Shown here piece after piece: positions 26,976-54,052 of a DNA stretch of 64,000 bases. Position numbers and translations under genes: made by a program. Source of the DNA: Pseudomonas aeruginosa PAO1 (GTDB taxonomy: Bacteria; Pseudomonadota; Gammaproteobacteria; Pseudomonadales; Pseudomonadaceae); the NCBI RefSeq assembly GCF_000006765.1, contig NC_002516.2. One strand, given 5' to 3'. The notes below the pieces were generated by a model that did no database searches, was not told the DNA's origin, and worked only from the letters and a program-made list of their open reading frames with translations. Position 1 is the first letter of the stretch. Each line of letters opens with the position of its first letter.

Positions 26976-28370
26976 ATGCCCGCGATGCCACACCGCCAGC
27001 GCGCCAGTGACAAAGACCTCTGGAGCCGTACCCTGAGCCTGGTTTTCCTCGGATTCCTCTGTTACGCCTTCCCCTGGTCGGTATTCGCCGCCCCCTTGCC
27101 GATCCCCACGGACGACACGCCGGCGCTGCGCATCCAGGGTTCCAACACCATCGGCGCGAAGCTCCTGCCGGCCCTGGTCGAGGGCCTGATGGAAGAGGAA
27201 GGCCTGGAGGATATCCGCCGTACCCCCGGAGAACGGGAAAACGAACTCCATCTGCTCGGCAAGAGCCGCGACGGCCGCCTGGTGAGGGTGGAGCTATCCG
27301 CCCACGGTTCGAGCACCGGCTTCACCGCCCTCCTCGAACGCCACGCCGAACTCGCCGCGGCCTCGCGTCCCGTCAAGGACAGCGAAGTTCGCGCCCTGGC
27401 CGGCTTCGGCGACCTGCGCAGCCCATATGCCGAGCAGGTGATCGCCATCGACGGACTGGCGATCATCCTGCATCCGGACAACCCGCTGGCCTCGCTGGAC
27501 ACCGCGCAAATGGCGGCGGTGTTCGCCGGCGAGGTGCATACCTGGGAAGAACTGGGCGGCAAGGGCGGCGCCATCCGCCTGTACGCTCGCGACGAGCAGT
27601 CCGGCACCTACGACACCTTCAAGGAACTGGTGCTGGCCAGTCACGGCAAAAGCCTGGCCAGCGACGCCCGCCGCTTCGAATCCAACGATCGGCTGGCGGC
27701 CGCGGTGAGCGCCGATCCGCACGCCATCGGCTTCGTCGGCATCGCGTCGGTGGGCCGGGCCCGCGCCTTGGCCATCGCCGACGGCGAATCGCTGCCGATG
27801 GCGCCCCAGGAAAGCCTGATCGCCACCGAGGACTATCCGCTGTCGCGCCGCCTGTTCCTCTACCTGAAGCCCGGCGAGAAGAACCCCTGGGCCCAGGCCC
27901 TGGTACGTTTCGCCCAGGGCCCGCGCGGCCAGGCGATCGTCACCCGCAGCGGCTTCGTCGCGCAGAAGATCCAGGCGGTGCAGATCGCACCGCGCCCGCA
28001 GATGCCCGCCGAATACCGCAAGCTCGCGGAACAGGCGCGGCGCCTGACGGTGAACTTCCGCTTCCAGGAAGGCAGCGCGCTGCTCGACAACAAGGCACTG
28101 CTCGACGTACAGCGTTTGCTGGACTACCTGCGGCAAAATCGGAAGTTGCAGGAGCGCACCGTGCTGGTGGGCTTCGGCGATCCCAAGTCCGACGCCGAGC
28201 GCTCGGTCCTGCTTTCGCGCCTGCGCGCCATGGCCGTGCGCCGCGAACTGGCCCGCGGCGGCGTGAGTTTCCGCGAGATCGCCGGCTTCGGCGACGAGTT
28301 GCCGGTCGCCAGCAACGACCAGGAACTGGGCCGACAGAAGAACCGGCGGGTGGAAGTCTGGGTCTACTGA
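26976..28370 (+). CDS. PstS-like phosphate-binding domain fused to an OmpA/MotB peptidoglycan-binding domain
   Basis: GSNTIG, HGSSTG, RDEQSGT PBP motifs; C-terminal LSRLRAMAV and NRRVEV OmpA_C motifs. Confidence 0.87.
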   Translation: MPAMPHRQRASDKDLWSRTLSLVFLGFLCYAFPWSVFAAPLPIPTDDTPALRIQGSNTIGAKLLPALVEGLMEEEGLEDIRRTPGERENELHLLGKSRDGRLVRVELSAHGSSTGFTALLERHAELAAASRPVKDSEVRALAGFGDLRSPYAEQVIAIDGLAIILHPDNPLASLDTAQMAAVFAGEVHTWEELGGKGGAIRLYARDEQSGTYDTFKELVLASHGKSLASDARRFESNDRLAAAVSADPHAIGFVGIASVGRARALAIADGESLPMAPQESLIATEDYPLSRRLFLYLKPGEKNPWAQALVRFAQGPRGQAIVTRSGFVAQKIQAVQIAPRPQMPAEYRKLAEQARRLTVNFRFQEGSALLDNKALLDVQRLLDYLRQNRKLQERTVLVGFGDPKSDAERSVLLSRLRAMAVRRELARGGVSFREIAGFGDELPVASNDQELGRQKNRRVEVWVY

Positions 28371-28442
28371 ACGCTGTAGCACTTTGTAACCTCGCCGTTT
28401 TGCCGGCGCCCGGAGCCTGGTTTATTTTTTCCGAGTGACTGC

Positions 28443-28518
28443 GGGCCCCTCTGACGGTAAGCAATTGCCGCCATGTCGGAGTCACATGACCATCCGACAA
28501 TTCGAAGCGAGGGGGCCC
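28443..28518 (+). ncRNA. Structured cis-regulatory leader of terC (candidate terC RNA motif / orphan riboswitch)
   Basis: P1 GGGCCCCTC pairs with GAGGGGGCCC (contains the SD); P2 CGGTAA-GCAA-TTGCCG with GNRA loop; P3 TGTCGGA...TCCGACA. Confidence 0.6.
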
Positions 28519-28519
28519 A

Positions 28520-29563
28520 ATGGCAGCTCTGCATGCATTTCTCACCGAACCGTTCCTCGGTACGGCTACCTGGTTCTGGCTGGCCTTCCTGGCCATCGTC
28601 ATCGTTCTCCTGGTCCTCGACCTCGGCGTGCTGCAACGCGACCACCACGAAATCGGCGTGCGCGAAAGCCTGCTGCTGTCCGCCGGCTACTTCGCCTGCG
28701 GCCTGGCCTTCGGCGGCTGGGTCTGGTACGCCTTCGGCCCCACCAGCGCGGTGGAGTACTACACCGGCTTCCTGGTCGAACAGTCGCTATCGATGGACAA
28801 CGTGTTCGTCATGGCGATGATCTTCAGTTTCTTCGGCATCCCCCGCCGCTACCAGCACCAGGTGCTGTTCTGGGGCATCCTCGGCGCCATCGTCCTGCGG
28901 GCGATCATGATCGGCCTGGGCGCCGCGCTGGTGAAGGAGTTCGACTGGATCATGTACGTGTTCGGCGCCTTCCTGCTGTTCAGCGGCGTGAAGATGCTGT
29001 TCAACAAGCACGAGGAAGAACCCGACCTCGAGCACAACCCGGTGCTGCGCTTCCTGCGCAAGCACATGCGGGTGACCAAGGAACTGCACGAGCATCACTT
29101 CTTCGTCCGCCTGCCGGACGCCAGCGGCAAGCTGGTGCGCTACGCCACCCCGCTGTTCTTCGCCCTGGTGCTGATCGAGCTGGCCGACCTGGTGTTCGCG
29201 GTGGACAGCGTGCCGGCGATCTTCGCCATCACCCAGGACCCGTTCATCGTCTACACCTCGAACATCTTCGCCATCCTCGGCCTGCGCGCCCTGTACTTCT
29301 CGCTGGCGGCGATGATCCACCGCTTCGTCTACCTGAAGTACGCCCTGGCCCTGGTGCTGGTGTTCATCGGTGCGAAGATCATGCTCCACGGTGTGATCGG
29401 CAAGATTCCCGCCGGCCTCTCGCTTGGCGTAACCTTCGGCCTGCTGGCGGGCGGTATCCTGCTCTCCCTGCTGAAGACCCGCACGCCGAAAGCCACCGTC
29501 GAGGACAAGGCCGAACCGAATGCCGAACACGCTCTGGATCGAACGTCTGGACACCCACGCTGA
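28520..29563 (+). CDS. terC: TerC/Alx-family membrane protein
   Basis: EQSLSMDNVF, LFWGILGAIVLR, DLVFAVDSVPAIFAIT; 347 aa. Confidence 0.92.
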   Translation: MAALHAFLTEPFLGTATWFWLAFLAIVIVLLVLDLGVLQRDHHEIGVRESLLLSAGYFACGLAFGGWVWYAFGPTSAVEYYTGFLVEQSLSMDNVFVMAMIFSFFGIPRRYQHQVLFWGILGAIVLRAIMIGLGAALVKEFDWIMYVFGAFLLFSGVKMLFNKHEEEPDLEHNPVLRFLRKHMRVTKELHEHHFFVRLPDASGKLVRYATPLFFALVLIELADLVFAVDSVPAIFAITQDPFIVYTSNIFAILGLRALYFSLAAMIHRFVYLKYALALVLVFIGAKIMLHGVIGKIPAGLSLGVTFGLLAGGILLSLLKTRTPKATVEDKAEPNAEHALDRTSGHPR

Positions 29564-53965: not shown

Positions 53966-54052
53966 TGGTGCCCGGAGCCGGGGTCGAACCGGCACGGGGT
54001 TACCCCCGAGGGATTTTAAGTCCCTTGCGTCTACCGATTTCGCCATCCGGGC
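53966..54052 (-). tRNA. tRNA-Leu(TAA), 87 nt, CCA encoded
   Basis: GCCCGGATGGCGAAATCGGTAGACGCAAGGGACTTAAAATCCC...GGTTCGACCCCGGCTCCGGGCACCA; long variable arm. Confidence 0.97.

Follow-up and report, generated by a model that had tools for sequence, protein, structure and literature searches.

A terC RNA motif upstream of a Pseudomonas aeruginosa terC/alx-family gene with a candidate translational expression platform of two exclusive folds

A terC/alx-family gene and its leader were analysed in a 64,000-nt window of the Pseudomonas aeruginosa PAO1 genome (the window is the whole stretch of DNA analysed, and all positions are counted from its first letter). The gene (28520-29563, + strand) encodes a protein of 347 aa that was assigned to Pfam TerC (1e-56) and to NCBIfam TIGR03718, R_switched_Alx (414.8 bits against a cutoff of 246.4), and it is the gene taken here to be regulated. 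TerC/Alx proteins are membrane proteins of metal homeostasis with a wide distribution; they have been linked to the export of Mn2+ and to the metalation of secreted enzymes. The gene upstream (26976-28370, + strand) encodes an unusual fusion of a PstS-like periplasmic binding domain with a C-terminal OmpA-family peptidoglycan-binding domain. No terminator was predicted between this gene and the terC leader, so read-through from the one into the other is possible. The whole window was scanned against Rfam 15, yielding two matches above threshold, one to tRNA and one to RF03067. The first (53969-54052, − strand, 84 nt, Rfam tRNA 56.6 bits) is probably a tRNA-Leu; its variable arm is long, and its anticodon loop reads CUUAAAA (anticodon UAA). 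A recent preprint states that there are apparently no studies of TerC in P. aeruginosa (PMC13015387), and a literature search for a paper on the induction of Pseudomonas terC found none.

The RF03067 (terC RNA) match, presumed to be an aptamer, covers 28433-28488 on the + strand with 48.6 bits against a gathering score of 39.9 (E = 2.5e-5 for the whole window, E = 1.6e-7 in a local scan). It is full-length (model positions 1-59 of 59, not truncated) and is located in the 5′ leader, ending 31 nt upstream of the start codon of the TIGR03718 gene. Both invariant family sequences, GGGCCCCUCUG (28443-53) and (G/C)AUGUCGG (28472-79), are present. The window has the same P1, P2, invariant GGGCCCCUCUG and AUGUCGG and the same downstream gene class (TIGR03718) as RF03067, and its core differs only by one G/G mismatch in P1. 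Based on the covariance-model match and the TIGR03718 gene downstream, the leader was identified as a member of a known orphan riboswitch-candidate family. An earlier note, made from the letters of this DNA, had proposed an orphan riboswitch candidate before terC and had mentioned the terC RNA motif; the leader is a scoring member of that motif. The family is already catalogued, and this instance adds no new one. The same note had seen no yybP-ykoY consensus, in agreement with the lack of any RF00080 match in 28300-28700 even at E ≤ 10 with permissive filters.

The terC motif is located in the 5′ leaders of TerC-family genes (TIGR03717/TIGR03718), and TIGR03718 was named as the main class that follows it (Weinberg et al., 2017; PMC5737381). 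The motif was considered a likely cis-regulator, possibly tied to Mn2+ or another cation, and none of the cations tried modulated the structure of terC RNA (Weinberg et al., 2017; PMC5737381). A literature search for a later paper on the terC motif found none; results for the name were dominated by telomerase papers.

The leader sequence was read directly, and all pairings listed in the earlier note were found in it. The anti-Shine-Dalgarno (anti-SD) strand GGGCCCCUC (28443-28451, + strand) is complementary to GAGGGGGCCC (28509-28518, + strand), which contains the Shine-Dalgarno (SD) region and spacer and is followed by A28519 and the AUG at 28520. This helix, which had been labelled P1 and is called the SD helix below, has a duplex energy of −19.6 kcal/mol. 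It is present as proposed, except that its SD side contains one G more than the loop contains C, which gives two registers of 8-9 pairs. The P2 hairpin CGGUAA-GCAA-UUGCCG (28455-28470, + strand) occurs in both of the folds discussed below; its proposed GNRA tetraloop is present in the window but is not kept in the alignment of relatives. The P3 hairpin (28474-28499, + strand), an anti-P1 element, pairs UGUCGGA (28474-80) with UCCGACA (28493-99) around an inner GUC-ACAU-GAC. The alternative pairing given in the earlier note joins GUGACU (28435-40) to AGUCAC (28480-85).

RNAfold on 28425-28535 returned the three-stem fold (SD helix, P2 and P3) as both the minimum-energy and the centroid structure, at −43.0 kcal/mol. 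Compared with dinucleotide shuffles this gives z = −2.47, and 5/200 shuffles were equally stable. The single-sequence fold is therefore only modestly above chance, and the stronger support is comparative. When the first terC codons were included, the freed P1 5′ strand (28435-28442) paired in the minimum-energy fold with GCAGCUCUGC, just after the AUG (28520-28535). This predicted pairing would extend occlusion to the start codon. By eye, it has no apparent conservation in relatives.

Relatives were collected in two pattern scans. A scan of one genome per species gave 120 loci, mostly from Alphaproteobacteria and from Pseudomonas and relatives, and a metagenome scan with a Pseudomonas-type P1 gave 116 further loci. 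Start codons were anchored on the conserved TerC N-terminus, yielding 106 distinct leaders with TerC directly downstream: 75 Pseudomonas-type leaders with a platform of 34-50 nt, and 31 others. Average linkage grouped the platforms of the 75 Pseudomonas-type leaders into 9 sequence clusters. Twelve relatives spanning all 9 clusters scored 45.6-57.8 bits on RF03067, all above threshold. Because parts of GGGCCCCUCUG and AUGUCGG were written into the search patterns, the invariance of these sequences is partly by construction.

Fold A consists of P1 and P2. In the Rfam consensus, P1 is formed by ACUGCGG (28438-44) and UCGGAGU (28476-82); the window extends it to GUGACU/AGUCAC. The P1 5′ strand GUGACUGCGG (28435-28444, + strand) pairs with 28476-28485, with a mismatch at G28441/G28479. 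It is followed by the J1/2 internal loop GCCCCUCUG (28445-28453, + strand), which is invariant, unpaired in the Rfam consensus and, together with G28443-44, the anti-SD. The J1/2 loop region corresponds to the invariant alignment columns 11-21. On the other side of P2, J2/1 (CAUG) and then the P1 3′ strand (UCGGAGUCAC) occupy 28472-28485 (+ strand). This is the switching segment common to P1 and P3: its partner is 28435-44 in the Rfam fold and 28488-99 in the three-stem fold. AUGUCGG is invariant in the leader alignment.

The core alone (28433-28490) has fold A as its minimum-energy structure, and RNAalifold on a MAFFT alignment also returned it. Covariation in Pseudomonas terC leaders, a check named in the earlier note, supported P1 and P2. 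Across 43 Pseudomonas-type leaders the two helices were 87% paired (P1 90%, P2 83%), and 9 of their pairs were changed on both sides. Six of the seven P2 pairs were among these changes, and P1 carried a compensatory CG↔UA exchange at alignment columns 7/58 in 9 sequences. None of 500 shuffles matched the observed percentage paired, the both-side-changed pairs or cells, or the covariation score. The GUGACU/AGUCAC pairing, previously treated as a side option, is thus part of the covarying P1 of the family by the Rfam alignment, by pair changes in relatives and by RNAalifold.

Conservation of the SD helix was assessed in the same leaders. The duplex of CGGGCCCCUCUG with positions −25 to +3 relative to the start codon had a mean energy of −20.1 kcal/mol in the 75 Pseudomonas-type leaders (−19.6 kcal/mol in the window), compared with −10.8 kcal/mol for 342 ribosome sites that belong to other genes of the same contigs. 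A duplex of −16 kcal/mol or better was found in 95% of these leaders and in 5% of controls; with controls matched for SD strength (n = 23) the mean was −13.2 kcal/mol, and 13% reached −16 or better. The Pseudomonas-type leaders are related, and these statistics overstate independence, which comes to about 9 lineages. Loop-SD complementarity was present in all 9 clusters of the otherwise divergent platform (−13 to −26 kcal/mol). Fold B, in which the SD helix and P3 form and P2 is kept, was the minimum-energy structure in 73/75 leaders, with at least 6 pairs between loop and ribosome site. In the MAFFT alignment of 43 leaders the SD helix was 93% paired, the sole variation being GC↔GU and UA↔UG exchanges on the ribosome-site (3′) side. 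Relatives with a degenerate GGAG (L134, L201 and L202) still carry GGGGCC. True covariation of the SD helix is impossible because the anti-SD strand is invariant, and RNAalifold on the MAFFT alignment did not predict this helix. By the minimum-energy folds and the duplex enrichment, the proposal of a stable helix that can hide the ribosome-binding site holds for the window and for its Pseudomonas-type relatives.

The SD-pairing and P3 platform lies outside the 59-nt RF03067 model, and the same complementarity was looked for in the rest of the family. The 31 other leaders had no enrichment (−10.3 against −11.5 kcal/mol). A search of the 120 nt that follow in 95 non-Pseudomonas members gave a best complement at background level (−13.7 against −13.4 kcal/mol, KS p = 0.07). 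SD pairing as a family-wide feature was therefore rejected, since it is absent from the alphaproteobacterial and other members. It follows that the SD helix is a lineage-specific expression platform, and that the aptamer loop is conserved for a reason other than SD pairing, given that other members keep it without an SD complement. The three-stem fold proposed as the structure of this leader stands as the minimum-energy fold, but neither its SD helix nor P3 occurs in the family model or in alphaproteobacterial members. These two helices are probably the alternative, OFF conformer of the lineage-specific platform.

Features of a different kind were seen downstream of the motif outside Pseudomonas. 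A hairpin of −8 kcal/mol or better directly follows P1 (in the 40 nt after UGUCGG) in 75/95 non-Pseudomonas loci. In 34/95 it begins ACCGCAUCG (GCAUCGRG...CYCGAUGC), and the 3′ tail of the Rfam model reaches over only part of it. This hairpin may be the alphaproteobacterial expression platform. In many of the non-Pseudomonas leaders a C/U-rich tract precedes the SD as well.

The P3 hairpin of the window has an energy of −12.3 kcal/mol, with z of about −3.6 to −4.0 against shuffles of the 3′ part. Hairpins of this type in relatives, taken from UGUCGG to just before the SD partner, had a mean z of −2.35, and 58/75 were at empirical p ≤ 0.05. Their sequence varies by cluster and always includes UGUCGG or the P1 3′ strand. 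In one relative (L097), GCAAC/GUUG replaces GUGAC/GUCAC in P1 (G-C to A-U), and the P3 partner strand changes in parallel. The number of P1 3′ bases paired downstream was not in excess over shuffles (5.4 against 4.9); only hairpin energy was above them.

Folds A and B are mutually exclusive and have 28443-44 and 28474-85 in common. The partner of G28443-44 is either C28477/U28476 or the spacer 3′ of the SD, and for 28474-85 the choice lies between the P1 5′ strand and 28488-99. Two exclusive conformers, one of them occluding the SD, were thus found in silico. In the window, fold A was evaluated at −18.1 and fold B at −39.3 kcal/mol. In the 75 leaders, fold A with the loop unpaired lay 6.3-21.7 kcal/mol (mean 14.4) above the minimum-energy fold. 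The predicted equilibrium unpaired probability of the SD-region bases was mostly 0.03-0.11 at 37 °C. Because fold B is much more stable, the mRNA is expected to be translationally off by default, and because the gap between A and B exceeds the usual energy of ligand binding, a switch would need kinetic control. Folding of the growing transcript was computed by 3′ end. Fold A was the minimum-energy structure for 3′ ends at 28485-28495, P3 won from 28500, and the SD helix was favoured once the 3′ end reached 28514. For the transition from A to B, a direct path gave an estimated barrier of about 13 kcal/mol.

The start of such a transcript was estimated from a promoter search. A consensus promoter scan at a threshold of 9/12 found none. 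A putative sigma-70-type promoter (28400-28428, + strand) matches at 8/12, with −35 TTGCCG (28400-05), a 17-nt spacer and −10 TATTTT (28423-28). This weak match would put the first transcribed base at about 28434-28436, where P1 begins. A start there would lie upstream of 28451, in line with the condition set in the earlier note. Among 72 distinct Pseudomonas-type upstream regions, most contain a TAnnnT box ending 6-10 nt upstream of P1, and the mean best −35/−10 score was 7.24 compared with 5.60 at random positions.

Control by a leader peptide from the invariant AUG (28473-28475) was considered and rejected. The AUG-initiated ORF ranged from 4 to >100 codons in the 75 leaders, its frame relative to terC was distributed 32/24/19, and neither length, frame nor peptide was conserved. 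What is conserved in the AUG of AUGUCGG is therefore the RNA sequence, not a start codon.

Taken with a probability of roughly 0.6, the terC-motif leader would act as a translational ON switch with two exclusive folds and a default OFF state. Fold A would form first during transcription, with P1 (28435-44/28476-85) and P2 enclosing the invariant GCCCCUCUG and (C/G)AUG and leaving the SD free. A ligand, or a tertiary structure stabilised by the ligand, would hold the invariant loop in the aptamer, so that the SD stays open and TerC is made. Otherwise fold B would form: GGGCCCCUC would pair with the SD region (28509-18), P2 would stay, and P3 (28474-99) would capture the P1 3′ strand, blocking initiation of translation. 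We infer the switching itself, its direction (ligand = ON) and the kinetic control from these folds. The direction was chosen because of the analogy with the Mn2+ riboswitch, which controls the same gene families, because of the stability of fold B as the default, and because the aptamer exists elsewhere in the family without an SD partner.

The same conserved parts could serve a different kind of regulator. A protein or a trans-acting sRNA might bind the conserved loops and open or close the SD helix with no sensing of a small ligand. The literature since 2017 reports no ligand, the conserved core is small (59 nt, two helices), and an invariant C/U-rich loop and a GGA-containing ribosome site could be recognised in trans. 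The core is, however, the same across Alphaproteobacteria and Pseudomonadales and stands before non-homologous genes, which is typical of metabolite or ion sensors. Regulation in trans was accordingly rated unlikely, ahead of the other alternatives.

Reversed polarity was rated slightly lower still. The SD-paired state would then be the ligand-bound one, and the leader would be an OFF switch with a ligand-stabilised loop-SD helix or pseudoknot. Several riboswitch classes, among them SAM-II and preQ1-II, build the SD into a ligand-bound pseudoknot, which counts for this possibility, as does the finding that fold B is by far the most stable structure and includes invariant nucleotides. Against it, alphaproteobacterial members keep the invariant loop with no downstream complement above background, so that the aptamer needs no SD strand. 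Moreover, fold B dominates without ligand, with the SD >90% paired, leaving little for a ligand to add. The exporter/homeostasis genes of this family are also normally switched ON by the Mn2+ riboswitch (PMC5737381).

It is improbable that the structure is static, with an SD helix that simply holds down the synthesis of a membrane protein or makes its mRNA more stable, and with a coincidental overlap of the folds. The large energy gap in favour of fold B counts for this reading. P1, which is incompatible with P3 and with the top of the SD helix, nevertheless covaries across the family; the invariant loops are kept where SD pairing is absent; and the P1 3′ strand is systematically common to two helices. 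An RNA thermometer or a transcription attenuator is least likely by far: the SD is sequestered by a helix and temperature had been named in the earlier note, but that helix is worth about −20 kcal/mol, the predicted SD unpaired probability stays low from 25 to 60 °C (0.016 at 25 °C, 0.084 at 42 °C and 0.16 at 60 °C, with no melting), so that temperature sensing is disfavoured, and no intrinsic terminator (G+C-rich hairpin with U-tract) was found in 28250-28650.

The leader was compared with known systems. The yybP-ykoY class (RF00080, including the E. coli alx leader) controls the protein families that also follow the terC motif (TerC/Alx, YjbE and COG3809-type) and, like that motif, lies in the 5′ leader (PMC5737381). 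Its architecture is unrelated, and its ligand is Mn2+, whereas no cation modulated terC RNA (Weinberg et al.). The alx leader of the yybP-ykoY class is described as controlling translation via alternative folds chosen during transcription (PMC5737381; PMC13594968).

The leader in the window also resembles SAM-II, SAM-III and preQ1-II riboswitches in that nucleotides of the aptamer core can pair directly with the SD. In SAM-II, SAM-III/SMK box and preQ1-II, conserved aptamer nucleotides double as the anti-SD strand, and no separate expression platform is needed. The SD is within the ligand-bound structure of these three classes, and the ligand switches expression OFF. The terC motif is unlike them in that the SD partner is absent in half of the family and in that the favoured reading is ligand = ON.

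The genes that follow the motif were listed for non-Pseudomonas loci (L001-L120). The first genes comprised TerC subfamilies (TerC/Alx and YjbE-type), DUF475, DUF465 (57-86 aa) and Zn_ribbon_TFIIB, and further Bax1-I (BI-1/YccA), TerB, DUF4112 and YegS/diacylglycerol-kinase-like genes. A spread over non-homologous genes would be expected if the element senses a small, common signal; judging by these genes, the signal of the terC motif would most plausibly be a cation, or else a membrane or metal stress related to it. The regulon-like spread may help in guessing the ligand.

What is added to the catalogued family is a specific expression-platform model, predicted from conserved pairings, for its Pseudomonas-type members. 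The model specifies the bases that would hide the SD, the hairpin that would compete with P1, and the mutations expected to lock the leader ON or OFF, and it supplies the information required for a reporter-based ligand screen. A further proposal, put forward tentatively and held to be rather doubtful, is that the sensing unit in Pseudomonadales is the whole leader of ~90 nt, with the loop doubling as anti-SD and a kinetic decision made during transcription. If that were true, probing of the isolated 59-nt core could miss ligand effects, and a translational reporter carrying the full leader would make the ligand directly screenable.
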